64,000 nucleotides of DNA, from NCBI GenBank assembly GCA_977017575.1, contig CDRNVI010000041.1, positions 310,001-374,000 of the forward strand. Reading direction: 5' to 3'. The DNA comes from Paramoeba atlantica. Its lineage: Eukaryota > Protista > Discosea. Position 1 is the stretch's first letter, and each line of letters begins with the position of its first letter. Below the pieces are notes generated by a model. It was not told where the DNA came from. It saw nothing but the letters and a program-made list of their open reading frames with translations, and did no database searches. The position numbers and the translations under genes were made by a program. Shown one piece after another: positions 5,060-52,900 of the stretch.

Positions 5060-6595
5060 CGAACCCTGCCTCGGCACACCAAACTGCTCTTTTTTCCGAT
5101 ATTCCGGAACCCAAGATAAACCGCGAAGGAAATTTTGACATTCTTGGGAGCCCCATAGGCTCTGCTCAACATTGCATAGATTTCCTTACGACACACGCCG
5201 TGGAACCGGCAGAAGAGACCCTGGAAGCTATAGAAATGCTCGAAGATCCTCAAATTGCCTTGTCATTGATCAGAAAGTGTGCGGGTTTTTGTCAAATGGT
5301 CCATTCGCTTCGAACTACCCCACCACATGAGCTTTCTGCACTCTGTCAGCGCCTTGATGAAGCAGTCCTCCATGCGTATGAATGGAATATATGCCCGCTT
5401 AGCTCCTCAGCTCGATCACAAGTTCAACGCCCGAAACGGTATGGAGGTTTTGGTCTCCGATCTGCATCTGCGCACCGCTCAGCGGCGTACGTGTCTTCAG
5501 TTGCTTTTGCTGCAGAGACGGATCGTTGGCTACCGTCAGATGCAGAAGGATTCTCTTCCGCAGTCCTGGACATCAATCGCCGGAGCGGAGGCCCCGTAGT
5601 TGATCCGGACACGGGAAGAGCATTAGAGGAGATCAGCTCCCCTTTTCCGACAGGATCTAGTCAAAGTACAGAAACGGACAATTCTTGCACCCCCCGTCAA
5701 CGTGCCTTGAGCGACGCAATCTCGGCGCACGAATTTTCATGTGCGTACGCAGCGGCGGACAGTAGCACTCGCGCGAGGTACACCTCTCAGACTGGAGATG
5801 GGGCCAGCAGCACACGTGCTCCAAGGCGAATTTATCACCTTCACGTGAGGTAAGCCTGGGGAACCTAGGGCCTGGCGGCTGTCCCACGAGGCCGGGCGAT
5901 GTCTTTATTCCGGGCTATGAGAAAGCTCAAGGTCTGGTGCTTGATTTTGCTGTCACCCACGTTCAGCAACCTAAATACACGGACTTAGTCCGCAACGCTA
6001 ACGGGGTGGCGGCAGGATCATTTGCGGAGCACTACGCCGCTTCTCACAAGGTGAAAGAGAGAGAGGAGGCGGAACAAGCAAAACATGTGTTTGTTGCCAT
6101 GGTGGTAGAATCATATGGTGCTTGGAGTGCAAGTGCCCTATCAATCCTTAGATGGGTTTGGAAGCATCGCGCCTCATGTTCCCAGGGGACTCTATCTCAA
6201 GAAGCAGCTACCCGTCAGCTGCTTCAAGAGCTTAACCTCACCCTGATGCGTTCTCAATCGAGAATGCTTGTCTCACGCATGCCGGCTGAAGATCCACAAC
6301 CGGCACTTATTTTGCAGTAGCCTAAACCAAGGCTCGCGGATACCGGCATGTTCGAAGGCTGAGGGTGCTGGTCTCGTCGACAGAGTCTATACTCACGCCT
6401 AGTCCGTCAGGGCTAGGTACCCCAAGTGAGGTAGTACACGGGTAGTGAATCTCCTCCCCGTCGGCCCGCATCCTGTTTCGCGACCGTGTCGCTGTCGACA
6501 CAGGCCCGCGCCTGCGCCCTCCCGTATAACAAGGGAAGGGTCCACAAGTCAGGCCGTGGAGAGGTCGAAAGACCCGGTCCGGAACGCGCGAATGG
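5060..6595 (+). mobile_element. 5'-truncated family C fragment with an internal deletion of about 230 bp
   Basis: Near-identical to 48253-50014; deletion junction at about 5811 causes a frameshift; includes a 3' module at 6362-6595. Confidence 0.9.
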
Positions 6596-6875
6596 TTGAG
6601 GAGTCGCCTGCAGGCCGGGTGAGGCGAAGCTGAGGGAGACCTTACCCCCCTGAAAAGTTGAAAAGTTGGGTAGGGGAAAGCAGGAAAGTAGGGAGAAAGG
6701 TGGGAAAAGTATGTCAAGAGGTGAGAAAGAGGAGAAAGAGAGAGAAAAATTTTCTTTATTTGCATAAAAACAATATAAAAAAAAAAAAAAACTTCAATTT
6801 GCGCCGTATGCTCAATGGAGGCTTTTTCAAATAAATTCGGATTTCTCGAGAGTTTGACAAAAAAAAAAAAAAAAA
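6596..6875 (+). repeat. Purine-rich 3' tail (type P1) + poly(A) + 68-nt segment + poly(A)
   Basis: The same tail recurs at 11341-11537, 21766-22036 and 50015-50182. Confidence 0.75.
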
Positions 6876-14073: not shown

Positions 14074-14107
14074 AACTGTTGTCAAAAAAAAAAAAAAAAA
14101 AAAAAAA

Positions 14108-14428
14108 CACGGGTAGTGAATCTCCTCCCCGTCGGCCAGCATCCTGTTTCGCGACCGTGTCGCTGTCGACACAGGCCCGCGCCTGCGCCCTCCCATATAG
14201 CAAGGGAAGGGTTCACAAGTCAGGCCGTGGAGTGGTCGAAAGACGCGGTCCGGAACGCGCGAATGGATTGGGTCTGTATTGCTTGTTTTAGTTTTTACTG
14301 TTTCTTGTTTGTAGTATATACTTAGGGGAGATTAAATTGCTAGTTTTGGGCTGAGAAAAAACAAAAGGTACATCTGTGGAAACAAAAAGAATTGCTAATT
14401 TGATTGCTTGTTTTCAAAAAAAAAAAAT
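14108..14428 (+). mobile_element. Isolated 3'-end fragment (half of the 3' module + tail + poly(A))
   Basis: Starts at CACGGGTAGTG after poly(A); near-identical to 24985-25290. Confidence 0.8.
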
Positions 14429-14801: not shown

Positions 14802-14883
14802 GTCCTTTGAGTAGTCCAGTTGGTAAAGGGGTTCCATTTTGACGCTGGATGTCCGCGGTTCGATTCCCGGCGTCGACATTTTT
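14802..14883 (+). promoter_or_regulatory. Degenerate tRNA-like sequence with Pol III box A, box B and a T-run
   Basis: Box A-like TAGTCCAGTTGG at 14812, box B GGTTCGATTCC at 14857, TTTTT at 14879; stems pair poorly, so it is not a functional tRNA. Confidence 0.5.
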
Positions 14884-15049
14884 GAACAAAAAGAAATTAT
14901 ATGCTCAAAATCGCGAAAAAAACAAATTCGGAACGATTTTTTTTTTCAGATTTTTTTTTCTTGAAAAAAGTGGCCAGCTGGGCCACCAAAAACACGGTTT
15001 GCATTTTGTATATATATAGAGGGAAAAATAATGTGCAGGTCCGAGTGGT

Positions 15050-16790
15050 ACAGTGTGTAGCTACAGTGGCCCTTGAGAGAGTGAGAGCAGTGCCACGTGA
15101 GGCAGTGATTGCACAGTGATGCAGTGCAGCTGCAGTGGCACGTGCCAGAGTAAGTGCACTTCCATGTGAGGCAGTGACTGCAGTGATGCAGTGTAGCTGC
15201 AGTGGCACGTGCCAGAGTAAGTGCACTGCCATGTGAGGCAGTGACTGCAGTGATGCAGTGTAGCTGCAGTGGCACGTTCCAGAGTAAGTGCACTGCCATG
15301 TGAGGCAGTGACTGCAGTGATGCAGTGTAGCTGCAGTGGCACGTGAGAGAGTAAGTGCACTGCCATGTGAGGCAGTGACTGCAGTGATGCAGTGTAGCTG
15401 CAGTGGCACGTGAGAGAGTAAGAGTAGGGCCACGTGAGGCAGTGACTGCAGTGATGCAGCGCAGCTGCAGCGGCACGTGCGAGAGTAAGATTACTGCCAC
15501 GTGAGGCAGTGAATGCAGTGTAGATACAGTGGAATGTGAGAGAGTCAGTGACTCGCGGGCGTAGTTGGTAGACGGTGGGCCTTACAACCTGCAGGTTGTT
15601 GGTTCGATTCCCGCTATCGACAAAACTCGCAACCTGGCGGCCTCACTACAAAGGGAAAGCGATCAGGAGTGCCTTCAAGGCCCACACCCAACCCCGCTCC
15701 CCTGTAGGACCGACCCGGAACCGCCGAGCTGAACCAGGCTCCAGCGCAGCCGCTAAATTGCGAGCTGCTTACGCAAAGGAGGCTTGAGACACAGCCTACA
15801 TGATGCAACGGGGTTGGGCGCCCGTCCTGGTAGCTACGGTTGGGTAGCCGTGCTCGGGCCGCAAGGCGTCGAGTGCCGTCTGGGAAGGGGGTAGCAAGAC
15901 GATGAAGGTCGGTGTCCTGAGACTCTACCCTAACGGTTGGCGCTGCAGAGCCCTCCGTGTTCTTCTCTTCTCTAAGATTACTGCCACGTGAGGCAGTGAA
16001 TGCAGTGTAGATACAGTGGAATGTGAGAGAGTCAGTGACTGCAGTGTAGCTACAGTGGCACGTGAGAGAGTAAGATTACTGCCACGTGAGGCAGTGACTG
16101 CAGTGATGCAGTGCAGCTGCAGTAACACGTGAGAGAGTGAGAGTACTTCCACGTGAGGCAGTGACTGCAGTGATGCAGTGCAGCTGCAGTAACACGTGAG
16201 AGAGTGAGAGTACTGCCACGTGAGGCAGTGACTGCAGTGTAGCTGCAGTAGCACTTGAGAGAGTAAGTGTACTGCCACGTGAGGCAGTGACTGCAGTGTA
16301 GCTTCAGTAGCACGTGAGAGAGTGAGAGTACTGCCACGTGAGGCAGTGATTGCAGTGTAGATACAGTGGCAGAGTGACAGGCAGTGCCACGTGAGGCAGT
16401 GACTGCAGTGATGCAGTGCAGCTGCAGTAGCACGTGAGAGAGTAAGATTACTGCCACGTGAGGCAGTGAATGCATCGGCACTGTACCTACAGTGGCACGT
16501 GAGAGAGTGAGAGCAGTGCCCCGTGAGGCAGTGATGCAGTGTAGCTGCAGTGGCACGTGAGAGAGTAAGAGCAGTGCCACGTGAGGCTGCAGTGTAGTTG
16601 ACTGCAGTGTAGCTGCAGTAGCACGTGAGAGAGTGAGAGTACTTCCACGTGAGGCAGTGATCGCAGTGCAGCTGCATTGGCACGTGCGAGAGTAAGAGTA
16701 GTGTCACGTGAGGCAGCGACTGCAGTGTAGATACAGTGGCACGTGAGAGAGTAAGTGTACTGCCACGTGGGGCAGTGACTCACGTTGAGT
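15050..16790 (+). repeat. 59-67 bp minisatellite rich in CAGTG/CACGTG, interrupted at about 15550-15975
   Basis: Unit CAGTGGCACGTGCCAGAGTAAGTGCACTGCCATGTGAGGCAGTGACTGCAGTGATGCAGTGTAGCTG, period 67 (15133, 15200). Confidence 0.9.
15550..15621 (+). promoter_or_regulatory. Second tRNA-like box A/box B sequence
   Basis: GCGTAGTTGGTAGA ... GGTTCGATTCCC ... TCGACA, ending like the copy at 14802. Confidence 0.4.
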
Positions 16791-16824
16791 GAGTCCACTG
16801 AGTGAGTCCCACGGGGGTGGGAGA

Positions 16825-17050
16825 GTGTTGTGGAAGAGTGGCCTGCTGGCCATGTTGTGGAAGGGTGGCCAGCTGGGCATGTTGTGGAAGTGACCATGTT
16901 TTGGAAGTGGCCATGTTGTGGAAGTGACCATGTTTTAGGAGTGGCCAATTTGTGGAAGGGTGGCCAGCTGGCCATGTTGTGGAAGGGTCGCCAGCTGGCC
17001 ACCAAAAACACGGTATGTGCTTCGTCGAAAAGTCGCCAGCTGGCCACCAA
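16825..17050 (+). repeat. About 27-bp tandem repeats GGCCAGCTGGCCATGTTGTGGAAGGGT
   Basis: Several degenerate copies; also at 31990-32170. Confidence 0.8.
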
Positions 17051-25410: not shown

Positions 25411-25412
25411 GA

Positions 25413-25454
25413 AACTAACTTTAACGATAAAGATACAGTTTCTGTACCTTGTTG
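25413..25454 (+). other. Complete 42-nt SL exon at the head of element E
   Basis: AACTAACTTTAACGATAAAGATACAGTTTCTGTACCTTGTTG begins with the canonical AACTAAC; no upstream SL-gene sequence and no intron. Confidence 0.88.
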
Positions 25455-25498
25455 ACTTATTTTAATTATCCCACTTTTTTCCCTGGGAGGGTATAACC

Positions 25499-28400
25499 AT
25501 GCCACAAGACGACCTTTTCGACGCGAACACATTACCTATGGACGACGACTCTTTCCGCCAGGAAGAAAATTCTCACAACACGGGTGATTGGGACCAATTT
25601 GCAGGTAACGCACACTTAATCTCTGGACAGAGCTCCTACAATGAACTTCTATACACGACACCCATTCCCAAGAACATACCGAAACACTGGGCAGAAAGAG
25701 CCGCCAAGTTCGCTGGAGAGAATCCCACGCCTGACACGGGCAGAGTGACGGATAATGAAGAGACCAATCATTCTCGCGTTGTGGATGCGAGCGCAGGAAT
25801 CCCGCCTGAGGTCTCTGGCGCGAAAATTTCTTCTCCAAACAAGCGCAAGAACGCAAACCCGTTACCGTCTCTACAACACAGCCCGCAACGAGTATGTCCA
25901 GCGGAAGGATGCTCTTGGAAGACGCCTCCACATGGTGGACAATGGCAAGCGTATTACAACCATGTGGCCCACCGACACGGCGAAAGCGTACCCACAGACT
26001 GGTGGGAGGGAGAAGGAAGATTTCTCTGCAAAGATTGCGGCAGGCACTACGACAAAAACAAGGAAAAGGCTCACCCCAAGCACTGCAAAGGCTGCGACCA
26101 CCATGTCCGATCTCCAACCCCGCCTAGACCAACGACACGTCCTAGAAACGCAGAGGATGTTCCTCCGGAAAACCTGCTACCAACGCTAAGCTCTGTGTGC
26201 GCACTGCCCATAAGCAAATGTAAAGACGTCCCACATTCCTGTAGATTCCTATGGGCGAGCATTTTGACACAAGCCTTTACTACTGCTGTTCAAGAAAACA
26301 CGGTGGAGGCATGGACGTTACTCGCAATGCTCCCTAAATGCGTCTTACCTGCACCGTACCGAGGCGGACGCAAAGGACACATGTCGTATTCTACACATGT
26401 GGAAAAAAATATGGAGCTTTGGTTAGCAGGAGAGTACCTTTTACTCTGGGAACAGGCCCTGAAAGATCACGGAAAAAAACGCTCCAAGCCTAGAAATACC
26501 GAAAGTGAAGAAGATAGAGCAGCAATCAGGGCAGAACTCTTGGCACGTCAAGGGGAGTACTCTAGGGGAATGGCCGCCCTAACTGCAGCACCCATGGCGC
26601 CAGACAACGAGGAGACCCTCGCGAAGCTATTAGAAAAGCACCCAGAGCCACCCGAAAACCCACTCGAGAACAACATACCACCAATCGAGGGTAACCCCCT
26701 GCGCCTGGAGGAAGTGGAGGTCAGGAAAGCTATCGATAGTTTTCACAGAGGGTCTTCCGCCGGAACAATGGGTCTACGCCCCGAGCACATCCAGTCAGCC
26801 ATTTTGGAACACGTCGACAAGAATGTGAATCCTCTCTCGGCACTCACTCGCCTCGCGAACCATATGCTCCGAGGAAAGGCACCGCCAGAAGTTCAATTAT
26901 TCTACGCTGGAGCTCGTCTCTGCGCCCTTGAGAAAGGTGAGGGGGACGTCCGACCCATAGCAGCAGGCGAAACCCTCAGACGCCTAATAAGCAAAGCAGC
27001 ATGCATCGCCGTAAAGGAGAAGGCTGGAACTTTATTCCGAGGGCAACAATATGGTGTGGCAGCATCCGCGGGGGCCGAACGAGTAATTCATCTTTGCCGG
27101 AAAACAATGCTAAACAATTTGGGGAGCGACAGTTTTGTCATCTGCAAAGTGGACCTCAGAAACGCTTTCAACAACGTCAGCAGACCGGTATTCACTTTGC
27201 TCACACGCATGAACTTTCCAGAACTTTCACCTTGGGTAGAGTGGTGTTACAAAAGCCCGAGTTGTCTTACTTATGGAAACCACTTCCTATCCTCAGCCGA
27301 AGGCGTGCAACAGGGTGATCCATTGGGCCCGCTTCTCTTTTCTCTTGTCCTTTCTGAAATTACTACAGAAATATCATCCCGGTCAAACTTAGACTCTCAA
27401 CTATGGTATTTGGACGACGGGGTGCTCATGGGGGAGGCTGCGGAGGTACGAAAGGCGCTGAACGTTCTTTCCGAGTTTGGACCACGGTGCGGACTTTTCT
27501 TTAACCCAACGAAATGTGAAATTATTACACCACCTCCATCAGCCCATCTCACAACATTATTTCCCGAGATACCAACGGCAAAATCCCGAGTGGACGGGAA
27601 TTTCGACATTCTTGGATCCCCAATCGGGTCTTCAGAACATTGCGCGGAGTTCCTCATGTCACACGCCATTGATCCTGCACGTGAGACTCTAGCTGCGATT
27701 GGGCTAATAAAAGACCCACAAGTCGCCATCGCCCTAATTCGCCAATGCACAGGTTTTTGTCAAATGGTGTACGCACTCCGCACCACACCCCCGCAGGCTC
27801 TTTCCCAGCTTTGTAGTATACTTGATGAAAACGTTTTAACAGCCGTGGAGTGGGCACTTTTTCCCCTGGAACCCCACGCACGAGACCAAATCCAACGCAG
27901 GAAGCGTCATGGAGGTTTCGGCCTCAGGTCTTCAACACTTCATGCATCAGCCGCTTACGTTTCTTCCGTTGCGCACGCCGCCGATATGGATGACTGGGAC
28001 CCTACAGAGGCTGACGGATTTACTGCCTCGGTAAAAGATGTAAACAGTAAGGCAGGAGTATCTCTAGTGGACCCTATTACGGGGCGCACACCAAAGCAGA
28101 ACAAGTCACACCATGACTCAGGCCAACGTCACAATTTCCTCTCGAAAAGAAAACGCCCACGGTGTACGCTCAACAAAATGGAGGCAGACAGGGCGACAGA
28201 GCCGGAGATGGTCATCCCCCGGCAGCAACAGCTCAGCCAGGCTATCTCCCAACAGGAATTCACCACAGCCTACGGGCAGGCCGACCCCCGCACGCGCGCA
28301 CGATGGGTCTCGCAGTCGGGGAAGGGAGCTGGCAGCTGGGCTTTTGTCACGCCCTCTAGGAACAAAGGATACGCTTTCACACCCACCGAGTTCCGCACGC

Positions 28401-29077
28401 TATCACGCTGGTGGCTAGGCTCCGATATTTACCAACAAGATCGACCTTGTCCCGCAAAAGGATGCGCATCACCCTTGCAGAGAGATGGGGAACATGCCTT
28501 GCTATGCAAGAACGGACACGGCCTCATCACCAGGCATAACGCGGTGTGCGAACAATTCGCCTCATTTTGCAGGAAAGCCGACATGGCACCACAAAGGGAA
28601 AAAATCCTGGGAAACAGGGGACCTGGAGGGGGTCTCACCAGGCCCGCCGACGTGTTCATACCCAACTTCACCCTGGGAAATGGTATGGTGTTAGACTTCG
28701 CAGTCACCCACGCACAGCAACTAAAGTATTTGGACTCCGTCCGAAATGCTAGCTGGGTGGCTGCGGGGTCTTTCGCTGAACATTACTCAACAACGAAGAA
28801 TACCCAACGTCAGGAAGCGGAAAAGGAAAACTTACTCTTCACCGCCATGGTGGTTGAGTCCTTTGGGTCGTGGAGCAAAAGTGCTCTAGCAGTCTTGTGG
28901 AAGGTGGGGGCGCTACGCGCCAGTGCGTCTAATGGTCTTCTTACTGACACACAGGCTCGAAATGAACTCTTAAAAGAGTTGAACGTGACGCTCATGCGCT
29001 CACAGGCCCGAATGATGGTCTCCAGGTTGGTCGTAAGTGACCCCAGCGCCCCCTTGGAAGGGGCCTCACTCTCATGA
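25499..29077 (+). CDS. Intact CRE-like retrotransposon polyprotein, family E (1192 aa): LsmAD-like, zinc fingers, RT, REL
   Basis: ATG 45 nt after the SL; CPAEGC...HVAHRH finger; CKDC...H...C; RT motifs KVDLRNAFN, QQGDPLGPLLF, WYLDDG; C-terminal C..GC...H...C, RHN, RPADV, LDFAVTH. Confidence 0.93.
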   Translation: MPQDDLFDANTLPMDDDSFRQEENSHNTGDWDQFAGNAHLISGQSSYNELLYTTPIPKNIPKHWAERAAKFAGENPTPDTGRVTDNEETNHSRVVDASAGIPPEVSGAKISSPNKRKNANPLPSLQHSPQRVCPAEGCSWKTPPHGGQWQAYYNHVAHRHGESVPTDWWEGEGRFLCKDCGRHYDKNKEKAHPKHCKGCDHHVRSPTPPRPTTRPRNAEDVPPENLLPTLSSVCALPISKCKDVPHSCRFLWASILTQAFTTAVQENTVEAWTLLAMLPKCVLPAPYRGGRKGHMSYSTHVEKNMELWLAGEYLLLWEQALKDHGKKRSKPRNTESEEDRAAIRAELLARQGEYSRGMAALTAAPMAPDNEETLAKLLEKHPEPPENPLENNIPPIEGNPLRLEEVEVRKAIDSFHRGSSAGTMGLRPEHIQSAILEHVDKNVNPLSALTRLANHMLRGKAPPEVQLFYAGARLCALEKGEGDVRPIAAGETLRRLISKAACIAVKEKAGTLFRGQQYGVAASAGAERVIHLCRKTMLNNLGSDSFVICKVDLRNAFNNVSRPVFTLLTRMNFPELSPWVEWCYKSPSCLTYGNHFLSSAEGVQQGDPLGPLLFSLVLSEITTEISSRSNLDSQLWYLDDGVLMGEAAEVRKALNVLSEFGPRCGLFFNPTKCEIITPPPSAHLTTLFPEIPTAKSRVDGNFDILGSPIGSSEHCAEFLMSHAIDPARETLAAIGLIKDPQVAIALIRQCTGFCQMVYALRTTPPQALSQLCSILDENVLTAVEWALFPLEPHARDQIQRRKRHGGFGLRSSTLHASAAYVSSVAHAADMDDWDPTEADGFTASVKDVNSKAGVSLVDPITGRTPKQNKSHHDSGQRHNFLSKRKRPRCTLNKMEADRATEPEMVIPRQQQLSQAISQQEFTTAYGQADPRTRARWVSQSGKGAGSWAFVTPSRNKGYAFTPTEFRTLSRWWLGSDIYQQDRPCPAKGCASPLQRDGEHALLCKNGHGLITRHNAVCEQFASFCRKADMAPQREKILGNRGPGGGLTRPADVFIPNFTLGNGMVLDFAVTHAQQLKYLDSVRNASWVAAGSFAEHYSTTKNTQRQEAEKENLLFTAMVVESFGSWSKSALAVLWKVGALRASASNGLLTDTQARNELLKELNVTLMRSQARMMVSRLVVSDPSAPLEGASLS

Positions 29078-29099
29078 GTGAGGTTCTCCAATGTGAGCC

Positions 29100-29340
29100 C
29101 GGATGCTGGTCGTGTCGACAGAGTCTATACTCACGCCTAGCTCGCGAGGGCTAGGTACCCCAAGTGAGGTATTACACGGGCAGTGAATCTCCTCCCCGTC
29201 GGCCAGCATCCTGTTTCGCGACCGTGTCGCTGTCGACACAGGCCCGCGCCTGCGCCCTCCCACATAACAAGGGAAGGGTTCACAAGTCAGGCCGTGGAAA
29301 GGTCGAAAGACCCGGTCCGAAGCGCGCGAATGGATTGGGC
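29100..29340 (+). ncRNA. Conserved 3' RNA module copy (family E)
   Basis: Same helices; CCTAGCTC-GCGA-GGGCTAGG with a G-U substitution; poly(A) 29536-29556. Confidence 0.75.
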
Positions 29341-29610
29341 ATGGATTGCTTGCTTTAATTTTTACTGTTTCTTGTTTGTAGTATATACTTAGGGGAGAGT
29401 AAATCGCTAGTTTTGGGCTGAGAAAAAAAGAAAAAGAAAATATACTTCTGTGGAAATAAAAAGAATTGCTAATTTGATTGCTTGTTTTAAATTCATATAC
29501 CCCCCTAATGGACCTACTATGTACTTGGTTCGTCTAAAAAAAAAAAAAAAAAAAAAGAGCGGACGGGGTCCTGGGGTATGGAGGTTGTCCCTATAATTTT
29601 GGAAGGTTAT

Positions 29611-29890
29611 GGATGTTAATCGGTTAACAGGCTTTATTCTCACGCCTTGTTTCCTTTTCGGAAGCAAGGTTCCCCAATGTGAGGTAAATATGAGTAAAGG
29701 TTTCCTTTATTCTACGATTAACGCCTTAATGTTTTTTAACCGCGTCACTGTTGACACGGCCGTACACCACGCCTAGTTGCTCCACACTTCTAGGTCCCAA
29801 GTTGGTGCATGGGCAGAGGTTGAAAGCGTAACCTGTGTAGCTCGTGTGAGCTTGTAAAGGGCGTGGCAGTGGACTGGTCATCTATTGCTA
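29611..29890 (+). ncRNA. Divergent homolog of the 3' RNA module (clade-2 G-type UTR)
   Basis: Colinear motifs TATTCTCACGCCTTG...CAAGGTTCCCCAATGTGAGGTA, GTCACTGTTGAC and AGAGGTTGAAA, with compensatory changes. Confidence 0.7.
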
Positions 29891-30460
29891 TCGTTATCCT
29901 TGTACGAGTTCTGTAAGTGAGGTTTGATTATGATTTCTTTTCTATATATGATTTACTATGTGTCCGGGCATTTTTATACAGGTTTTATTTTGTGTGACGT
30001 GTGTGCGGGCAGGTTGGTCGAGGGTTCCGGTGGGGGGAACCACGTTAACAGAGTGACAGTGACATATATGTTTGCAGGCCTAAAATTGTCGTGAGAACAT
30101 ATTATTTACAGTTTAATGTTGATGTTATGTTTTGAGATTGGGAAATAGGGCTTGTGAGCAATCAGATACATTTTAGTTGTTTCTTTGTTTACTATTCGAT
30201 ACATGTTATTTATTGAGGGAGATACGGAGTATCTAACTCGCTTACTAAGGTTAATTCCAAAACATGAAAATGCCCATCAAAGAAGCGAGAGATCGAGTTT
30301 TTTCAAAATTTTAAAACGTAGCAGTACCTCACTAGATGAACTCTTTAATACTCGAAAAATCATCTACAACGACCTCATTTCCCAAATTGTAGAACACTTT
30401 TGGTAAAAAACAGTGCGTCTGCAAAGGTCTGCGATACGACAAACTGGTTGACTAAGGAGA

Positions 30461-30542
30461 GTCCTTTGAGTAGTCCAGTTGGTAAAGGGGTTCCATTTTG
30501 ACGCTGGATGTCCGCGGTTCGATTCCCGGCATCGACATTTTT
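30461..30542 (+). promoter_or_regulatory. tRNA-like box A/B sequence (duplicate of 14802)
   Basis: Lies in a duplicated block, 30211-32170 matching 14553-17000 apart from the 15550-15975 insert. Confidence 0.5.
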
Positions 30543-30709
30543 GAACAAAAAAAATTATATGCTCAAAATCGCGAAAAAAACAAATTCGGAACGATTTTTT
30601 TTTTCAGAAATTTTTTCTTGAAAAAAGTGGCCAGCTGGCCACCAAAAACACGGTTTACATTTTGTATATATATAGAGAGAAAAATAATGTGCAGGTCCGA
30701 GTGGTACAG

Positions 30710-31950
30710 TGTGTAGCTACAGTGGCCCTTGAGAGAGTGAGAGCAGTGCCACGTGAGGCAGTGATTGCACAGTGATGCAGTGCAGCTGCAGTGGCACGTG
30801 CCAGAGTAAGTGCACTTCCATGTGAGGCAGTGACTGCAGTGATGCAGTGTAGCTGCAGTGGCACGTTAGAGAGTAAGTGCACTGCCATGTGAGGCAGTGA
30901 CTGCAGTGAGGCAGTGTAGCTGCAGTGGCACGTGCCAGAGTAAGTGCACTGCCATGTGAGGCAGTGACTGCAGTGATGCAGTGTAGCTGCAGTGGCACGT
31001 GCGAGAGTAAGTGCACTGCCATGTGAGGCAGTGACTGCAGTGATGCAGTGTAGCTGCAGTGGCACGTTAGAGAGTAAGTGCACTGCCATGTGAGGCAGTG
31101 ACTGCAGTGATGCAGCGCAGCTGCAGCGGCACGTGCGAGAGTAAGATTACCGCCACGTGAGACAGTGAATGCAGTGATGCAGTGCAGCTGCAATAGCACG
31201 TGAGAGAGTGAGAGTACTGCCACGTGAGGCAGTGATGCAGTGTAGCTGCAGTGGCACGTACGAGAGTAAGAGTAGAGGCAGTGAATGCAGTGCAGCTGCA
31301 ATAGCACGTGAGAGAGTGAGAGTACTGCCACGTGAGGCAGTGACTGCAGTGTAGCTGCAGTGGCACGTGAGAGAGTGAGAGTACTGCCACGTGAGGCAGT
31401 GACTGCAGTGTAGATACAGTGGAATGTGAGAGAGTCAGTGACTGCAGTGTAGCTACAGTGGAACGTGAGAGAGTGAGAGTACTGCCACGTGAGGCAGTTA
31501 CTGCAGTGTAGCTGCAGTAGCACGTGAGAGAGTGAGAGTACTGCCACGTGAGGCAGTGACTGCCGTGTAGATACAGTGGAATGTGAGAGAGTCAGTGACT
31601 GCAGTGTAGCTACAGTAGCACGTGAGAGAGTGAGTGTACTGCCACGTGAGGCAGTGACTGCAGTGTAGATACAGTGGAATGTGAGAGAGTCAGTGACTGC
31701 AGTGTAGATACAGTGGCACGTGAGAGAGTAAGTGTACTGCCATGTGAGGCAGTGACTGCAGTGATGCAGTGTAGCTGCAGTGGCAGGTGAGAGAGTAAGT
31801 GCACTGCCATGTGAGGCAGTGACTCCAGTGCAGCTGCATTGGCACGTGCGAGAGTAAGAGTAGTGTCACGTGAGGCAGCGACTGCAGTGTAGATACAGTG
31901 GCACGTGAGAGAGTAAGTGTACTGCCACGTGGGGCAGTGACTCACGTTGA
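30710..31950 (+). repeat. 59-67 bp CAGTG minisatellite, second array
   Basis: Same unit as 15050-16790, without the internal insert. Confidence 0.9.
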
Positions 31951-32189
31951 GTGAGTCCACTGAGTGAGTCCCACGGGGGTGGGAGAGTGTTGTGGAAGAG
32001 TGGCCAGCTGGCCATGTTGTGGAAGGGTGGCCAGCTGGCCATGTTTTGGAAGTGGCCATGTTGTGGAAGTGACCATGTTTTAGAAGTGGCCAATTTGTGG
32101 AAGGGTGGCCAGCTGGCCATGTTGTGGAAGGGCGGCCAGCTGGCCATGTTGTGGAAGGGTGGCCAGCTGGCTTTCGCTACTGTTTTGCC

Positions 32190-33835: not shown

Positions 33836-34040
33836 AACCCAGATTGAAAGGGGCGAGGGAGATACGAAGCAACAGGCGTGGCAGATTCCCACTGAAAAGA
33901 AATGGTATCTCCCCGCACGAGAAAAGCCTTTGCGCTTTCTAGCTCGGAGACAAGCTTCGTGCGGGAGATACCATTTCTTTTCAGTGGGAATCTGCCACGC
34001 CTGTTGCTTCGTATCTCCCTCGCCCCTTTCAATCTGGGTT
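33836..34040. repeat. 205-bp palindromic element, copy 2, spacer in the opposite orientation
   Basis: Arms as in 17213-17417; spacer is the reverse complement with one mismatch. Confidence 0.85.
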
Positions 34041-34428
34041 ATGCCCCGCGGCGTGGATTTCTAATAGTCCACGTTTGGAAATTTAGCCGCGGGGCAGGGA
34101 GTTGTTTATGCCTGCTTGGCCCTTCGGGGCACATAATTTCTTCAAATTATGATTTGTTTCAAATAGTGTTGTAATTTCATTATTCATTCTTTATATTCTT
34201 GGTAGGCTATTTTTTCTACTTACGTTTCAAAAGTTTTTGTGCCCGCCCACCGAGCCCCCAGCCATTTGGTCGAGGGTTCCGGTGGGGGGAACCACGTTAA
34301 CAGAGTGACAGTGACATATATGTTTGCAGGCCTAAAATTGTCGTGAGAACATATTATTTACAGTTTAATGTTGATGTTATGTTTTGAGATTGGGAAATAG
34401 GGCTTGTGAGCAATCAGATACATTTTAG

Positions 34429-36522
34429 TTGTTTCTTTGTTTACTATTCGATACATGTTATTTATTATGCCCAGCGGCGTGGATTTCCTTACCGGCCGTA
34501 CCTCTACGCGATAGTGGCTGGCCCGGGGACACCCGAACTGGCTCAGTTTGTGGGAAGTTTGAGACCAGGCCAACGCCTGTGTTACACGACGGTCCGGGAG
34601 ATGGACCACAGGATAAATCAGCTTCTCGGTCCGGGGTATGGAACGCATTCCACAAAAAGAGGTGCAATAACTTGCCTGTTTCACGAGATCTCCCTCGGGA
34701 ATCTCAGGATGGAGGACGTCCAGAACCTCACGAAACACCTCAACGTCGAATCACTGTTGCGCTACAACGCAAGCAGTATTACAACGGCAAGGGCTCTCGG
34801 GACGCAGAGAGTCTCAGTACTTCTCCCAGTGCTGTAACCTCGGAGCACGTGGCAAAGTGCTTCGAGGAAGTGCCTTACCTTCGCAGGCACTCCGTTGTTT
34901 GTGCACGCCGCTCTTCACGGCTAGCCAAGGCACACGACGCTCACCTACCTTTGCACGTTAAGAAGTCGATACCTGTTATCCATATGGATCAGGTTAAGGA
35001 GTGGATGAGTCTGTCAGCTGCCACTCGTTTTCGCAAGGTAGTGGATGAACTATTATGGGTACCTAAAGCCCCGTACCCCGAACCTAGTGTGAAAGGTTCG
35101 TTGCCTGAGGCGGACGTCCGATTGTTGGAGGACGCAGGCATAATCTCTAAGGTCCCGGCGCAGGAGTTGAGAAAGCGCCCATCTGTGCAGTTCATGATTC
35201 CCTTCACGGTTGTGGAGACCGATGATGAGGGCAATCAGCGCAGAAGATTTATTTCATGGACAAGGGACGATAACGATAGATTAAAATCATATGAACCAAA
35301 GGTCCCATTATATCATCCCTCCAAGTATCTTCATAAGGCGCATGAGCCGATGGCTGTGAAGCGGGACTTCACATGCGGGTTTTACCAGATTGGTATCCCG
35401 AAGAGGGCGCGGCCCAAATTCCGCCTTAGAACGACCAGTGGAGACGTGTATGAGATGAACGTCCTCCCGATGGGCCATAGGTGTGCACCGGAGGTTATGC
35501 ACACGGTTACCGCCGCGATTGCTGGCGAGGCGTCGATTTGTTCTCAGCGCTACTCGTTTCACCGAGGCGCTATCGACGTTTATGTTGACGGAGTTCGGTT
35601 TGCAGGAACCGACTCCGAGGCCACCACGTACGCTCAGTTCATTGACGAGCGTTGCGACAAAGCGAACGGTCTTTTCAAAGATCGGGGTCAGCCCCCTGTA
35701 GCACAGTACGTGTTCAATGGGGTGGCGTTCGACCATAACGCGCATACGGTCTGCCTGGGGCCGCGAGTGATCAGGAAACTGAGAGCCGACTCTTTCTTCA
35801 ACATTTCCTTTGTTGACCTAGAGGCGGTGGTGGGGCGCCTCATTTATGGCTCCGCAGTTCTCCGACTCAATATGCCGCGATTTTATTTCGCTTTGAAGGT
35901 GGCGCAACGGCGTATCAACTTGTTGAACCGTTGCCCGAAGTTATGTGACCGTCCGGTCGCACTCCCTGTCGTCACTCGCTCCATGCTAGCAGAGTGGAGA
36001 AACGAGTTGTTGGAGAATGTTCCACGGTCTCCACCTCCCCATCCCGATGTTGTTCCACACAAGCATCGTCTCTACACCGATGCCTCGGTGAAAGGATGGG
36101 GAGCGATTATGTATTTAGACAGCGGAGAGGTTTTGATTACGGGAGAGGCGTGGCCTGAGTCATCCTCGTATGAGGTGAATCGTGCGGAAGCTGCAGCAGT
36201 CCGCTTAGCCCTCGAGAAGTTTTCCGCGCATTGCCCCCGTGGAACCTGCTTGGATGTTTTTGTTGATAACACCTCCTGTCAGGCTGCACTGAACAGGATG
36301 ATCTCCAAGTCAGAGGGGGTTTCAATGGAATTGCGCGAAGTCCTGCGACTGACAGAGGAGAAAGGTATTTGTGTGAAGGCAGCGTATATATCCACGGATG
36401 AGAACCCGGCGGATGCTGTCAGTCGCGGGAAGGAGATTGAGATGGAGAAGGTCGAGAGATACGAAGGTAAGATCGAGAGAGACATTAGTAAGGTAGGCAG
36501 TCATATTCAGAGAAAGCCCTAA
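34429..36522 (+). CDS. DIRS/TATE-type reverse transcriptase + RNase H (true start lies downstream of the ORF-finder start)
   Basis: RRRFISW, KRDFTCGFYQI, LPMGHRCAPEVMH, YVDG, FNGV; RNase H YTDASVKGWGA, NRAEAAAV, FVDNTS, NPADAVSR. Confidence 0.85.
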   Translation: MFLCLLFDTCYLLCPAAWISLPAVPLRDSGWPGDTRTGSVCGKFETRPTPVLHDGPGDGPQDKSASRSGVWNAFHKKRCNNLPVSRDLPRESQDGGRPEPHETPQRRITVALQRKQYYNGKGSRDAESLSTSPSAVTSEHVAKCFEEVPYLRRHSVVCARRSSRLAKAHDAHLPLHVKKSIPVIHMDQVKEWMSLSAATRFRKVVDELLWVPKAPYPEPSVKGSLPEADVRLLEDAGIISKVPAQELRKRPSVQFMIPFTVVETDDEGNQRRRFISWTRDDNDRLKSYEPKVPLYHPSKYLHKAHEPMAVKRDFTCGFYQIGIPKRARPKFRLRTTSGDVYEMNVLPMGHRCAPEVMHTVTAAIAGEASICSQRYSFHRGAIDVYVDGVRFAGTDSEATTYAQFIDERCDKANGLFKDRGQPPVAQYVFNGVAFDHNAHTVCLGPRVIRKLRADSFFNISFVDLEAVVGRLIYGSAVLRLNMPRFYFALKVAQRRINLLNRCPKLCDRPVALPVVTRSMLAEWRNELLENVPRSPPPHPDVVPHKHRLYTDASVKGWGAIMYLDSGEVLITGEAWPESSSYEVNRAEAAAVRLALEKFSAHCPRGTCLDVFVDNTSCQAALNRMISKSEGVSMELREVLRLTEEKGICVKAAYISTDENPADAVSRGKEIEMEKVERYEGKIERDISKVGSHIQRKP
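34466..34837 (+). pseudogene. C-terminal fragment of a tyrosine recombinase (TATE/VIPER/DIRS type)
   Basis: GTHSTKRGAIT (HxxR/K-type box), TKH...LLRY (catalytic H and Y) and ARALGTQ; overlaps the RT frame as in DIRS-order elements. Confidence 0.7.
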
Positions 36523-36657
36523 GGGACAGGATCACCAAATACAAAAAAAAACAAGACAAGAAAAAAAGAAAAAAAACAAAGACAAAAAAAAAAAAAAAAA
36601 AAAGCGGACGGGGTCCTGGGGTATGGAGGTTGTCCCTATAATTTTGGAAGGTTATGG

Positions 36658-38762
36658 ATGTTAATCGCTCACAGTGTACGCAAACGTCTGACTCGTTGCA
36701 GAATCATTGCTCTAGCCAAACCGAACAGCGGCGTAAGACCTGCAGCGATGGGGGATACCATAATTAAAATATGTGGCACAATTCTTCTTCAGCGTCATGA
36801 GGCTGCGCTAAAATCGCTCTTCCAACCTATCCAGCGAGGGATCTTGCAGAAGAATGCCTGTGAATCAATTGTACACGAGTTACTTTCTGAGTATGAAGCT
36901 GGAAATACGGTGCTCACCATTGACTTCAAAAACGCGTATAATACACCTCATCGAACAGCAATAGAAAGAGCTCTAACTCAATATCCCATCTTCAAACATT
37001 TCATGCGGATTTTTTATTTGGAATATGGCCAGCCAACCGAACTTCCCTTCTTTGCTAACAACTCGCTGCATTCAGTCATAGAAAGCTCCTCTGGGGTTCG
37101 GCAAGGATCCGCGCTGTCATCGCTTTATTTCTGCGCTGTGTTGCATGGAGCTTTGAAAGAAGTAGCTGATGCTTACCCCGAGGTCACCGTACGCGCGTAC
37201 CAGGATGATGTAACGATGTGTTCTAAAAACGAGGCATCTCTCGAGGTTGCATTCTTGCATTTCAAAGAGCTTACGAGCGATCTGAACTTAGAAATAAACT
37301 ACCGCAAATGCGAAATTTTTCAAGGATCCAGGGCATTACACATCAAAGATTCCTCTCTTCGGGAACTTGGGGTTCAAGACTGCGTAGATACAATCAAAGT
37401 GCTCGGAGGATACATAGGCAACAACAAAGCCGTAGAACGCAAACTTCTCGAAAAATTGGAGAAGCATAACTGTCTGTTTCGAAGACTCAGCCGCATGGGG
37501 CCAAGTAATCTTTCCCTCGCAATTTTAAAGCGTTGCACGATACCGCGCCACGATTATCACCTGCGAGTACATAAACCGGGCGCATCACTCCTTCTAGCTC
37601 AGACTTTTGACAAAGAGATCCAACAAGTCTTAAGAAAGTGGTGCGATGCTGACGAAGATGCCTTAGCACTTGCCTCTTTGCCGTGCAAAATGGGAGGATT
37701 GGGAATAACCTCCACAGTTCTGAAACATCGCTATCTTTTTGAAGCTTCCCGTCAATCTATTGATGAGCATTTCAACCCATATGAAGCTCCGATAGAAAAC
37801 TCTGAGAAGCAACAAAAAGGCAACAAGACCACAGGGACACAAGGAGTACGCACGGCACTGAAGAAACTAGTCAATGACGAGCACGAAAAACTTGCGGCAG
37901 AGCTGAAAACAAAACCACGTTTCAGTGGAGTTATGAAGCGCTCGAAGGAAGCAAATTTTCATCTCCTCTCGACCAACAACTACGTAAACCCTTACCTCTT
38001 CCAGCAAACGCTCAAGATGAGGCTGGCCGTCAGTCTCCCTTCTTCGAGTAATATCTCCTGTCCTGGATGCGGGGTCAGTGAATCGCCCTCCGGAATATTT
38101 CCACACGTTGCAGGTTGCTCGAAATGTGCTGGGATGAACTGTACGAGAAAACACTCACACATTGTTCGATACCTTTCAAATCTATGTGGAAAAGCTGGAC
38201 TCCCATGTGCGTTGGAACCGCGTCTGTATTCATCGTTCTTTTGCACGAAGTGTAAGTGCTCTATTTCACCAGAAGCAGCGGAGAAAAAAAAAAAGCTTAA
38301 GGATCTACACCCGGAGGGATAACGTCAAAAAAAAAGAAAGCTATCGGACACCCATGCAGAGCTCGTCGTATACGTTCGGGCCCCGATCTGGCCATAATGT
38401 GGCCAGATATTGGAGAAGTCCTCTACGATGTCACAGTCGTACACACACTCTGCAGCAGCTACCAGAAACAGTCCAGCAAAGCCCTTCTAGAGAGTGCCAT
38501 AGAAAGAAAACATCGAAAATACATAGTGGAGAAAGGAGTGGATCCAAACTATTTTCGATGCATAGAGCTAACTGATTGTGGAATGCTGCACGAAAATACG
38601 AAGGAGCTGATTAAAGACCTCTCGAAACGCGCTGACTTAGACCCCAAAGTGATACGGGAAGCCTTCCAATTGGAAAACGAAAAGTTCGCAGCATACACAA
38701 TCGTGTCGCAGCTGCGAAATCACATCAAGGGCGAAAAGTGGCTAGGAGGCCTCAGACTCTGA
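36658..38762 (+). pseudogene. 5'-truncated clade-2 CRE-like RT-REL, family G, disrupted at about 38283-38338
   Basis: IDFKNAYN, GVRQGSALSSLYF, AYQDDV, GGLGI, CPGC, KH, EPR, SGPDL, YDVTVVH; poly(A)-bounded micro-insertion breaks the frame. Confidence 0.88.
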
Positions 38763-38887
38763 ATGTAGTCGGTTTTCGCGACTCTCCGACAGCACTCCCA
38801 TCTTATGCCTTTTACTTTACGACCTGTGCCTCCGAAATGTGGTCGTTCTGGGGTTTGGAGGTTGTCCCTATAATTTTGGAAGGTTAT

Positions 38888-39170
38888 GGGTGTTAATCGG
38901 TTAACAGCTCTTTATTCTCACTCCTTGTTTTTTCGGAAGCAAGGTTCCCCAATGTGAGGTAGGGATGAGTAAAGGTTTCCTTTGCACTACGGTTAGCGCC
39001 TTAATGTTTTTAGCCGCGTCACTGTTGACACGGCCCTACGCATCACGCCTAGTTGCTCCACACTTCTAGGTACACAAGTTGGTCTAGGGCAGAGGATAAA
39101 AACGTAACCTGCGTAGCTCGTGTGAGCTTGTAAAGGGCGTGGCAGTGGACTGGTCATCTATTGCTATCGT
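38888..39170 (+). ncRNA. G-type homolog of the 3' RNA module in the family G 3' UTR
   Basis: GGGTGTTAATCG (38888) pairs with CGGTTAGCGCCT (38990) using G-U pairs; same internal motifs as 29611. Confidence 0.7.
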
Positions 39171-39479
39171 TATCCTTTTGTGAGTTCTGGGATGGTATAT
39201 AAAAAATGATTTTACTATGTGATTGGGCATTTCTTTTGTTTATTTATATTGATTGTGTGACGTGTGTGTGGGCAGGTTGGCCGAGGGTTCCGGTGGGGGG
39301 GAACCCCGTTAACAACGTGACATATGATTTTTTGGTTTTATGCAGGCTTTCTTTTGAACGAGGTATAAGCGTGTGAATTCTATCTACTATACGTTCTTGG
39401 ATTTCGGGACGATTTCGATGTGTGATTATATTAGTCATAGTTGTTTACTTATATTTGTTTGTTTACGTATATGTTTTCA

Positions 39480-41312: not shown

Positions 41313-43868
41313 TTGTGGTTCTTTATAGCTTGGGCCCACCTATTTCTGTTCTGGGCCATCGTCTTCCTCGTTCAGTTGGAGTGCCAAAATTTAGAGAAGA
41401 ACTTTAAGAAGCGACCGCGAGGATCCTGGAGGATGGTTAAGGAGGTTATAGGGGATGAAAGGACAGCTATTCATGTACAAGGAAAGTCTGTCAAAGATAA
41501 GCTTGAAACGCTGAAAACGCACTTTGCAGCAAACTATTGCCCAGTGAAAGAAAACTCGTCCACAGACTTTGAACAAGTTAAGGGTATTAAAATATGTGAT
41601 GACCCTTTTTTGTTCGAGGAGCTGTTGGCAGCGCAGAAGCAAATCGCTCGAAGGAAAGCCACTGGTTCTGACGATATCCCGATAGAAGCATACTGCGCGC
41701 TAACCGAGCACGACGAGTTATCCAGGACATTATTACGTTTGATCAACTCGGTGTACTTAAAGGGATATACGCCGGACTCGTGGCGCGAAATACTTCATGT
41801 GCCAATTCCGAAAAAAGGTGATCTCTCTCAGCTGAAAAACTGGCGTGCTATCTGTTTGACGAATCACATAGCCAAATTGGTGAACTACATGATTTTGAAT
41901 AGATTACAACCAGAAATCGAACCAAGACTGCGTAATGCACAGTTTGGCTTCCGACCCTTTCGATCGACAGTTGGTGCACAAGCGATTCTAACAGAAGTAT
42001 TCGGAAAGGCATCTCGGCATGCACATGATCTTTTCTTGGGATTCATCGATTTTCAGAGCGCGTTTCCCTCGATATCACATGACGCCATCAAAAAAGCACT
42101 GGATGCTTTTGCAGTGCCGCCAATGCTGAGGCAGATGATTCTTGCGTCGTACAATGCGCCCTCTGGGTACGTCCGTGTCGATTTCGGGGAAACAGATCAT
42201 TTTGACATCTCCTCTGGAGTGCTTCAAGGTGATGTCCTTGCCCCGTTTCTTTTTATAATGTGTCTGGACAGAATACTCGAGCGAGCAATGCAGAATTCGG
42301 AATTCGGGATCACACTTCGACGTATTGGAACTAAAAGCCGAGGTATGCAGGAAATCAAATTGACAGACATTGACTACGCCGACGACATCGTGTTCTTTTC
42401 CAATACGAAGGAAACTCTCGAGGCTATGATTCTAGCATTGATCAAAGAAGCAGGGAAAGCGGGGATGAAATTAAATGTAGGTCCAATGAAAACAGCGTGG
42501 ATGGTTGTTGGGCGAACAGCTAGGAAGCAAGAAGGACGTATTATCCTACCAGAGTTGGGTCTTGTACCGCGAGTCGAATCCTACCGCTACCTAGGGCACA
42601 TGATGAGCGCCTACGCGACATCGGCAACGCTGAAAAACCGAATAAAGCTAGCATAGATGGCGTTTCACCGATTGAAACCACTATGGAACAATGGTCTAAA
42701 CGTTATCCTTCGTCTTCGTATTTTCAATGCGATGGTGAGCTCCGTCCTTTCATATGGGTGCGCAACTCTCACGCCGAGTAAAACAGAGCTTAAATCAGCA
42801 GATATAGAAGTCAACAAAATGAGGAGGCTGGCTACAGGAACTCCTTTGTGGGATGGACACAAATCAATCCCAACGAAGGCTCTCTATCGAGGAGGCTTGA
42901 TGTTTTCGACTGTAGTGAAAGTAAGCAGAGTCAAACTTGTAGGACACCTTCTAAGACATGACACTCCGTTTTATGACGTTATGATGTGGAACAAGGACCC
43001 CAATTCACGCGTAAAATCACTATCTGAAGCGTGCGCGGAGGACCTGGGCATTGAAATCGAACACTTATGGGAACAGGCCCAAGATCGTACAGCATGGCGT
43101 ATGCTGGTTGAAGGCTTAAGGGAGAACCTTGAACCTACCGCACGTTACGTACCTGTGTCAATAAAAAAGCGAGAAATAGAACAAATCTTACTCTCAAACG
43201 CGAGCGCGATGGAAAAGTGGGAATCTTTGCAGTTTTTCGAAGAGGGATCGACGTTATGGCCCGATTATGGGCTCTTGCACATGTATTGTGATGGGTCATC
43301 ACAACGTAAATTCAACCAAATAGTCGCGGGAGCTGCGGTAGCTGTGGCACAGAACGGGTATGTTGCCTTTTCGAAGAAACAATCATTGCAAAAGGCGGAC
43401 GCCACATCCATCAGATCAGAGCTTCACGCATTTTTTCTTGCACTGCAAATCGGGGAGGGTAAGCAAGAATCCTTCGTTGTGCATGTCGATTCGGAGTACG
43501 TCTGGAACTTTTGGCACAAAGTACGTGTACCGTATCAGTTGGGTAAATACGCAGACTGGGAAAATGCAGATTTGCTTGAACGTATTTCCAGCTTGGCCCG
43601 TTCGATTTTGAAGAAATACAAGATTTTCGTAGTGAAAGTTCGAGCTCATAGCGGAAACTTTATGAATGAACTCGTGGACAAACTAGCGAACGAGGCAGAA
43701 GTCGAACTCGTGCGTGAACCAGTGAATCCCTCAACCACAGCGTGTAGAGTTATAAATTCTACGGCCGAATGCGGCCATAAGTGCCGTGATAAGGCCTCAT
43801 GTCTACATTCCTGTTGTAAGCGGCATTTAGGAGTAGCGAAGGATAATGTCAACATTTCTTTGTCATAA
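41313..43868 (+). pseudogene. RTE/ingi-like LINE RT + RNase H, one in-frame TAG, no visible AP endonuclease
   Basis: PIPKKGD...WRAICL, QFGFR, FIDFQSAF, GVLQGDVLAPFLF, YADD, YRYLG. TAG at 42654-42656 replaces the W of RI..AW.AF. RNase H CDGS, SELHA, DSEYV, KVRAHSGN.MNELVDKLA; (ATT)n tail at about 43905-43928. Confidence 0.87.
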
Positions 43869-52785: not shown

Positions 52786-52900
52786 GGTAAGCGGTGGTGC
52801 ATTAGTATCCCGAATAGCGTCTTATTAGGGTGCCGATGTTCATCCATACGAGCTACGTGCCCTGCATAGCTGAGAATTCTTAGGTCATAAAGCAGTTGAG
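52786..52900 (-). pseudogene. Short inverted fragment of an RTE-like LINE C-terminus
   Basis: LRILSYAGHVARMDEHRHPNKTLFG resembles the LRWAGHVARM...R.PK..L.G motif. Confidence 0.6.

Follow-up and report, generated by a model that had tools for sequence, protein, structure and literature searches.

In stringent-type partnerships between long and short interspersed nuclear elements (LINEs and SINEs), the second element carries the 3′ RNA structure of the LINE and may use the LINE protein. R2 proteins bind a structured, pseudoknotted 3′ untranslated region (UTR) to start target-primed reverse transcription (PMC10499050, PMC11194090, PMC12222951). The VIPER and TATE elements of kinetoplastids are described, in the passages of PMC6681497 drawn on here, as having gag-like, tyrosine recombinase (YR) and reverse transcriptase (RT)/RNase H open reading frames (ORFs) in that order, together with split direct repeats. 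Here we report on a structured RNA module in a 64,000-nt stretch of Paramoeba atlantica DNA (assembly GCA_977017575.1, contig CDRNVI010000041.1, positions 310,001 to 374,000 of the forward strand), which we refer to as the window and number from its first letter. The module stands 3′ of the RT ORFs of one clade of LINEs (clade 1) and, in a strongly diverged form (G-type), at two further places, near 29611 and 38888, which an earlier note on this DNA had assigned to the UTR of a second LINE clade (clade 2; QGSxL and YQDD motifs). Taking the reading as a whole, we think it probable that the G-type stretches are a homologous fold whose host is a VIPER/TATE-like retroelement, and that the module is a portable, captured cassette that may serve as a handle for a protein. 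New here are the lineage of G-type copies, the covariation that it shows and the element to which it belongs.

The window is a dense array of plus-strand retrotransposons that lack long terminal repeats (non-LTR) and have poly(A) tails, several of which begin with a spliced-leader exon (..ACAGTTTCTGTACCTTGTTG). The clade-1 module is ~245 nt long, follows RT ORFs and occurs ten times. In the LINE that provided our reference copy (29099-29345, + strand; 5′ domain 29101-29243, 3′ domain 29240-29327), the ORF 25499-29077 ends with its stop at 29077, the module begins 24 nt later at 29101, and an AT-rich tail of ~190 nt leads from it to a poly(A) that ends at 29558.

The clade-1 copies resemble the R2 3′ UTR RNA in that both are structured RNAs of ~150-250 nt in the 3′ UTR of a non-LTR element with a restriction-like endonuclease (RLE), with a conserved fold, a drifting sequence and a possible pseudoknot (PMC10499050, PMC11194090, PMC12222951). 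They differ from it in showing no sequence or Rfam match, and the binding of a protein is here only putative, by analogy. Moreover, the fold described here is nearly unchanged across LINE families with ~50% identical proteins and is also found in a tyrosine-recombinase retroelement; we know of no R2 counterpart for such sharing across divergent LINEs and a recombinase element. The LINE/SINE partners differ as well, since the carrier of the G module is autonomous, with gag-like, recombinase and RT/RNase H genes of its own, and since the module is internal in this carrier, 700-900 nt from the element end, with no poly(A) after it. The same carrier shares the ORF order and the split direct repeats with VIPER/TATE as laid out in the passages of PMC6681497 mentioned above. 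The searched passages of that paper, however, mention no structured LINE-type 3′ module, and three other VIPER/TATE-like families of the same assembly are without one.

The G-Type Copies as Probable Homologues of the Clade-1 Module

A covariance model (R1; 145 positions, 47 pairs) was built from nine clade-1 copies only, with a structure derived solely from clade-1 folding, and the search was run with filters off. The model matched 29609-29761 with 51.6 bits (E = 5e-10) and 38886-39035 with 45.4 bits (E = 1e-8), both on the + strand. The background consisted of a partial module relic (22.7 bits), a palindromic tandem repeat (18 bits) and unrelated matches of at most 18 bits. A model blind to the G type thus recovers both of the copies that the earlier note had aligned with clade 1, at 51.6 and 45.4 bits against no more than 22.7, and the outcome that the note had named as refuting its reading, a failure to do so above background, did not occur. 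A sequence-only nhmmer profile of the same alignment gave the two G copies 21.1 bits (E = 9e-6) and 13.5 bits (E = 0.002); as the R1 scores exceed these, structure adds ~30 bits. The sequence homology of the G type to clade 1, judged by these profiles, is weak but real, and we take the G-type stretches to be, in all probability short of certainty, diverged true homologues (~61% identity) of the 5′ domain of the clade-1 module.

Searches for a described relative were negative. No Rfam 15 family, including HDV-like and other ribozymes, SRP RNA and snRNAs, reached its gathering score in the window, and at relaxed thresholds the region 29050-30250 gave chance-level matches only (E > 3). ARAGORN found no tRNA, a metagenome scan with the core motif of the module returned no match, a look for RNA runs brought up none, and literature searches found no description of the module.

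When single clade-1 and G-type sequences were folded independently by minimum free energy (MFE), they arrived at the same three-way junction (z -3.7 and -4.4), in which a long stem P1 (11-12 bp) closes the fold, P2ext/P2/P2a form one compound hairpin that includes an asymmetric CCCCAA loop, and P3 is another hairpin; a hairpin P4 follows, whose loop and 3′ strand are able to pair with the junction as well. In the first G copy (5′ domain 29609-29761, + strand, delimited by the R1 match, the MFE fold and the pair counts), P1 is formed by 29611-29622 with 29715-29725, the junction GUUAACAGG occupies 29623-29632, P2ext/P2/P2a pairs 29633-29654 with 29660-29670 and 29679-29688, the CCCCAAU loop lies at 29671-29678, and the P3 and P4 hairpins are at 29692-29712 and 29741-29759. 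The second copy (38886-39035, + strand) belongs to a different G subtype and is 87% identical to the first. Besides the overall identity, the G module departs from the clade-1 module in a bulge in P1, a larger P2a hairpin, 11 compensatory pairs and the class of its host element, while keeping the fold.

The pairing is maintained well above controls. In each G copy of the window, 26 of the 47 model pairs are unchanged, 5 are changed on one side, 11 are compensatory and 4-5 are broken. Canonical pairs number 42 of 47, compared with a mean of 19 and a maximum of 30 for shuffled partners. Across the model alignment (A4; 84 matches, 54 of them distinct), which was fitted to R1, 94.7% of cells are paired and 26 of the 47 pairs show double changes, compared with 38-47% and 7-14 pairs, respectively, for slid partners. 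A cross-check with RNAalifold on a structure-blind MAFFT alignment of 11 divergent copies recovered P1, P2a, P3 and P4, with 11 of 29 pairs compensatory. A plain MAFFT alignment, A5, is unusable for counts in P2 because its CCCCAA/GUGAG region is shifted by one base, and A4 took its place for the counts.

The earlier note had named several helix replacements, and these are real. In P1, GGAUGCUGGUCG/CGGCCAGCAUCC is replaced by GG(A)UGUUAAUCG/CGAUUAACGCC, with three double changes from G-C/C-G to A-U/U-A and one bulge; CCUAG/CUAGG becomes CCUUG/CAAGG in P2a, and GUCG-CUGU-CGAC becomes GUCA-CUGU-UGAC in P4. Of the motifs that it had listed as unpaired and kept, the CCCCAA(U) loop is indeed conserved and unpaired, but CTCAC is not, as it pairs with GTGAG to form helix P2. 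In L020, a third lineage, P2 takes the compensatory form CUCGC/GCGAG, and the GUA that follows GUGAG pairs with the UAU that precedes CUCAC. A further pairing joins the junction GUCGACAG (in the G type GUUAACAG or GUUGACAA) to the P4 loop and 3′ strand (CUGUCGAC; in the G type CUGUUGAC or UUGUUGAC), which are complementary to it. Its paired fraction is 88%, compared with 22-59% when partners are slid, and 3 of its pairs covary. This pairing would compete with the P4 stem, so that the complementarity may represent either a pseudoknot or a switch. The central claim, that the same fold has been kept by selection through compensatory changes, is supported.

The 3′ half of the G module is less clear. 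A clade-1-only model of the 3′ domain (model R2) scored 9.1 and 7.5 bits on the two G copies, values that are non-significant alone, although they are the two best matches in 9.5 kb and fall at exactly the expected positions. In the first copy the domain spans 29756-29890 (+ strand; 9.1 bits) and consists of P6 around a P5 hairpin CCUAG..CUAGG with a C-CAAGU loop, followed by GGUUGAAAGCGUAACC; the layout is that of the clade-1 3′ domain, and the homology is weak. The second copy has its weak match at 39032-39112 (+ strand; 7.5 bits, second-best of the 9.5 kb). The replacement by GGTT-GAAA..-AACC listed in the earlier note belongs to this weakly matched half (29762-29890). Among G units, mean pairwise identity is 91-92% in both module domains compared with 64% in the adjacent spacer, which indicates that the module is still constrained inside the element that carries it.

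The Host of the G Unit

We assessed the context of the G copies in the 45.7-Mb genome, which holds at least 96 candidate copies, 30 loci of which were inspected. The element upstream of the copy at 29611 is the clade-1 LINE 25411-29558, and the G unit (29559-30214, + strand), the 3′ region of a VIPER/TATE-like retroelement that is common to the 30 loci, starts with GAGCGGACGG right after the poly(A) of this LINE and is cut ~20 nt short of its normal end ..GGCGTGGATTTC. At the inspected loci the unit begins nearly always at the same base (GAGCGGACGG..), directly after an A-rich tract, and at 28 of the 30 no LINE ORF is found upstream. In at least 9 of the 30, a stretch of 1.5 kb upstream aligns colinearly (94-97% identity) with 35148-36667 of the window, which takes in the 3′ portion of ORF 34429-36522, an A-rich linker and nt 1-64 of the unit. 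Downstream of the module the unit continues with an AT-rich spacer and then with repeated segments, ending ..GGAGCCCCTCGGCGTGGATTTC, beyond which (GGATTTC) the flanks of the loci diverge. In one VIPER/TATE-like family the module is found on the coding strand, ~130 nt past the stop of the RT/RNase H ORF, preceded by the recombinase-element ORF and the linker and with no poly(A) downstream. None of the G copies has the placement of the clade-1 module, directly after the stop of an RLE-type LINE and ~190 nt before poly(A).

A partial element of this family is present in the window. Its RT/RNase H ORF (34429-36522, + strand; LPMG, YVDG and DAS motifs) has on its 5′ side a terminal repeat (A+B; 34039-34487, + strand) that is 99% identical to positions 2105-2553 of loci L002-L007; at other loci the same segment is found 3′ of the G module. 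ORF 34406-34837 holds the remnant of a tyrosine-recombinase C terminus. The RT/RNase H ORF is followed on the + strand (36523-36667) by the A-rich linker (36523-36603) and by nt 1-64 of a G unit (36604-36667), which are 100% identical to 29558-29622 and broken off within the 5′ strand of P1. A full-length relative, L077, comes from an assembly in the ENA database. It has a gag-like ORF with a CCHC knuckle (4175-5611), a YR ORF (5615-6772) and a third ORF with RT/RNase H (LPMG, YVDG) that extends to 8472, after which come an A-rich linker, a G module (58.4 bits with R1) and split direct repeats (8989-9223/9422-9656 and 4136-4205/9328-9397). Its Pfam matches are weak only (RT_RNaseH 0.006, zf-CCHC 0.016-0.1). 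The YR ORF shows the pattern R..HxxR..H..Y, with LRREQF, HSIKRGA and TKH..LLRY read by eye, and its language-model features lie at 0.97-0.98 to Phage_integrase clusters; no Pfam or PDB sequence match was obtained for it. Because this ORF order and these repeats match the layout given in the consulted passages of PMC6681497, we assign the G unit to a VIPER/TATE-like host.

LINE poly(A) tails abut the G unit not only at 29558/29559 but also at L011-L014, L018 and L020. In the two loci that reach far enough, L018 and L020, the recombinase-element ORF and the linker stand just upstream of a 5′-truncated LINE piece, and the A-rich linker can therefore be seen as a landing place for LINEs.

The assignment to clade 2 was not borne out. 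The clade-2 element of the window is an RLE-type LINE fragment (36668-38847, + strand) without its 5′ part and without a 3′ module of its own, in which ORFs 36658-38322 (RT, YQDD) and 38397-38762 (part of a PD..D..K nuclease) remain. Over the RT, the proteins of the two clades share only 21% identity (E = 1e-12), and both have a PD..D..K nuclease-like C-terminal part as read from the sequence. The region 36604-39300 is a chimera of G-unit nt 1-64 (subtype G1), the clade-2 fragment, and a G unit of another subtype from its nt 11 onward, so that nt 11-64 of the unit are duplicated on the two sides of the fragment, at 94.5% identity. The chimera would more likely have arisen through template switching or recombination than through a normal insertion. 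The junction at 38847|38848 (ATGTGGTCGTT|CTGGGGTTTGG) occurs once in the genome, and in five LINE copies whose RT is 98% identical, ..ATGTGGTCGTT is followed by a different, shortened variant of the module, with a short P1, P2/P2a and a CCCCAAC loop and without P3, of which the genome has 13 copies. Neither R1 nor R3, a combined and broader covariance model, detected a module within 1.5 kb downstream of clade-2 families at 88, 79 and 73% RT identity. The clade-2 LINE/G junction is thus a single chimera and not a trait of the family, which matters for annotation.

Some further observations concern the G unit and its host element. The leader of the unit (29559-29610) has a Sm-site-like AATTTTGG between two small GC-rich hairpins. 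A host small-RNA gene serving as an insertion target was considered as the identity of the unit and is ruled out by its contiguity with the recombinase element. The leader was also compared with the intron of a spliced-leader RNA gene; the inspected spliced-leader copies all precede 5′ UTRs of elements, the candidate spliced-leader gene L067 has a different intron, and this identity was rejected. A literature search for the spliced-leader sequence gave no matches. In L077, two transposase genes of the DDE_Tnp_IS1595 (Merlin) type within 1-2673 adjoin the recombinase element; reports of Merlin in kinetoplastids are confined to Bodo saltans and Perkinsela (PMC8101967). The genome was taken to be euglenozoan, and its VIPER/TATE-like elements and Merlin-type DDE genes would plausibly, as a guess, fit a bodonid-like, free-living kinetoplastid. 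At 57090-57140 of the window, after ORF 52896-57017, there is a terminal-repeat piece of a second recombinase family (as in L078: AGAAGTCTACGCATGGAAATTTAACCGAGGGGCTAATATCGGG).

Probable Capture and Exchange of the Module

The earlier note had left it open whether the RNA was ancient or had moved between clades. Clade 1, G and the type III of L020, the main lineages of the module, stand about equally far from one another (55-62% identity). Three other recombinase families, with RTs 69, 51 and 41% identical, have no module. In the 69% family the first repeat comes within ~130 nt of the ORF stop, accompanied by GACCGGTCATCTATT, a short motif whose place in the G family is just after the module (both read by eye). 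As the 69% family joins its ORF stop to the repeat and GACCGGTCATCTATT with no module between them, the G family seems to carry an insertion. This points to capture by the recombinase element rather than common inheritance.

Exchange is also indicated among the LINEs themselves. In seven ORF/module pairs of clade-1 families (1385-49739), the C-terminal 420 residues are only 48-53% identical, yet the modules reach 93-97% identity; the histories of RNA and protein do not match, and the cassette has therefore been exchanged among LINE families. Two places in the window hold an old module directly before a new one. An older, divergent copy at 13452-13564 (+ strand; GCCUCG.., CCCCAAG and GUGAGAUA; 22.7 bits with R1, 50.7 bits with R3) overlaps the end of ORF 11588-13504 and directly precedes the standard clade-1 module at 13580, and a relic of the P2/P2a hairpin (CCUCACUCUCAUGAGUGAGGUUCUCCAAUGUGAG; 29063-29092, + strand; 21 bits with R3) is just upstream of the clade-1 module at 29099. 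Such tandem arrangements (13452/13580 and 29063/29099) suggest that 3′ cassettes were added or replaced. Searches with R3 yielded no further variants in clade-2 LINE loci or in other recombinase families, and a 15-bit R3 match at 57537-57667 does not look like a module. Movement is the half of the earlier alternative that the evidence favors: as far as these comparisons go, the cassette is one exchanged between elements, not one inherited from an ancient source.

Other Features of the Window

Other clade-1 modules start at 126, 4589, 6363, 13582, 18992, 20994, 24910 and 49782 (+ strand), and a 5′-truncated one occupies 14106-14276. A LINE of another type, in which an RT (YADD) is joined by an RNase H domain at the C terminus, lies at 41313-43868, with no module detected nearby. 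DNA resembling human sequence was not encountered. tRNA-like stretches at 30466-30535 and 14810-14880 have motifs resembling an A box and a B box (AGTCCAGTTGGTAAAGG .. GGTTCGATTCCCGG); ARAGORN calls no tRNA in them. The repeated unit of which they form part includes 67-nt tandem repeats as well (14981-16900 and 30637-32064).

Alternative Explanations for the Identity of the G Unit

One might suppose that the likeness of the G type to clade 1 is a product of chance or convergence, with unrelated folds having short motifs in common, and the modest identity and the non-significant 3′ domain would agree with this. We regard it as extremely unlikely, given that even the sequence-only profile reaches significance (E = 9e-6 and 0.002), that the covariance model E-values are 5e-10 and 1e-8, that helices, CCCCAA loop and the CUGU loop of P4 follow one another in identical order, and that intermediate variants are known (L020, L063 and L058 types). 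Homology being granted, the module could be the native 3′ UTR of clade-2 LINEs, inherited from the common ancestor of both LINE clades. The copy at 38886 does lie 124 nt after a clade-2 ORF stop, and one clade-2 family carries a reduced relative of the module (CTCACGCCTTG..CCCCAACGTGAGGTA). Nonetheless, with a junction that is unique in the genome, sister LINE copies whose 3′ UTR differs from the same base onward, clade-2 families at 88, 79 and 73% RT identity that have no module, 28 of 30 G loci that have no upstream LINE ORF, and at least 9 of the 30 that continue into the recombinase element, we give such inheritance very little credence. Alternatively, the unit may be an independent, non-autonomous SINE-like element that uses LINE machinery and has landed repeatedly in A-rich tracts, the tail of the recombinase element included. 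That it starts at a fixed base, preceded by A-rich tracts or by genuine LINE poly(A) tails from several types of element, would fit this, as would the fact that it carries a LINE-type module and no ORF. This too appears unlikely, since the 3′ end ..GGCGTGGATTTC has no poly(A), since the unit passes without a break into the split direct repeats, a copy of which stands at the head of the recombinase element (34039-34487), with flanks that part only beyond GGATTTC, since many loci show ORF, linker and unit in colinear order at 94-97% identity, and since at L018 and L020 it is the LINE that is inserted into the linker, with the recombinase-element ORF just upstream. The G unit is best placed, then, as the 3′ region of the VIPER/TATE-like element.

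Proposed Function and Implications

We propose that the module is a portable cassette that would pass between element families by recombination or template switching, and that the recombinase element may have captured an old version of it, which it would keep under selection. By analogy with R2, the fold could be a putative protein-binding handle, whose likeliest partner would be the clade-1 LINE protein that starts target-primed reverse transcription. Carriers of the fold would then be able to draw on this protein, or else on a host factor that recognizes the fold.

Several points weigh against this proposal. The inspection covered 30 of at least 96 G copies plus the three other recombinase families, the 3′ domain of the G copies is not significantly matched by the clade-1-only model R2, and most of the covariation comes from a few deep splits (clade 1, G and type III) and so represents few independent events. 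Target-primed reverse transcription, moreover, plays no part in a recombinase retroelement, whose RT is unrelated, and conservation of the module in such an element argues against a function tied only to a LINE RT. The position of the G module, 700-900 nt from the 3′ end of its element, is unlike that of a LINE tail. The unrelated RT of this carrier, together with near-identity of the module across divergent LINE proteins, weakens a strict reading in which one RT recognizes one RNA.

These same observations lend weight to the possibility that the module has the identity and history described above and that the fold acts through a host factor, in mRNA stability, export, translation or 3′-end choice, and would be useful to any retroelement mRNA. 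Conservation in an element with an unrelated RT and different integration chemistry would be expected under this explanation, as would the near-identity of the fold across LINE families with ~50% identical proteins and its location directly after the stop codon; kinetoplastid gene expression is, moreover, set mainly post-transcriptionally according to the consulted part of PMC6681497. On the other hand, all copies of the fold that we have seen are in mobile elements, with no host gene or mRNA known to carry it, and most clade-2 LINEs and the other recombinase families manage without it. A host factor is thus possible, and we hold it to be the less likely partner. Somewhat more tentatively, the cassette may be independent of any particular RT, with the recombinase element either using the LINE ribonucleoprotein, one autonomous element parasitizing another, or depending on a required host factor, and with the junction/P4 pairing forming a pseudoknot or switch; this we consider rather doubtful. 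A protein-binding handle, with the clade-1 LINE protein as its likeliest partner, remains the putative function that we favor.

The G and type III lineages supply covariation that is unavailable from the near-identical clade-1 copies, and they make the structure, including the possible pseudoknot, testable. The crossing of the cassette into an order of retroelements with a different replication mechanism constrains what the module may do and makes a role tied to one RT less likely. Whether the recombinase elements hijack LINE proteins or make use of a host factor thereby becomes a concrete question.
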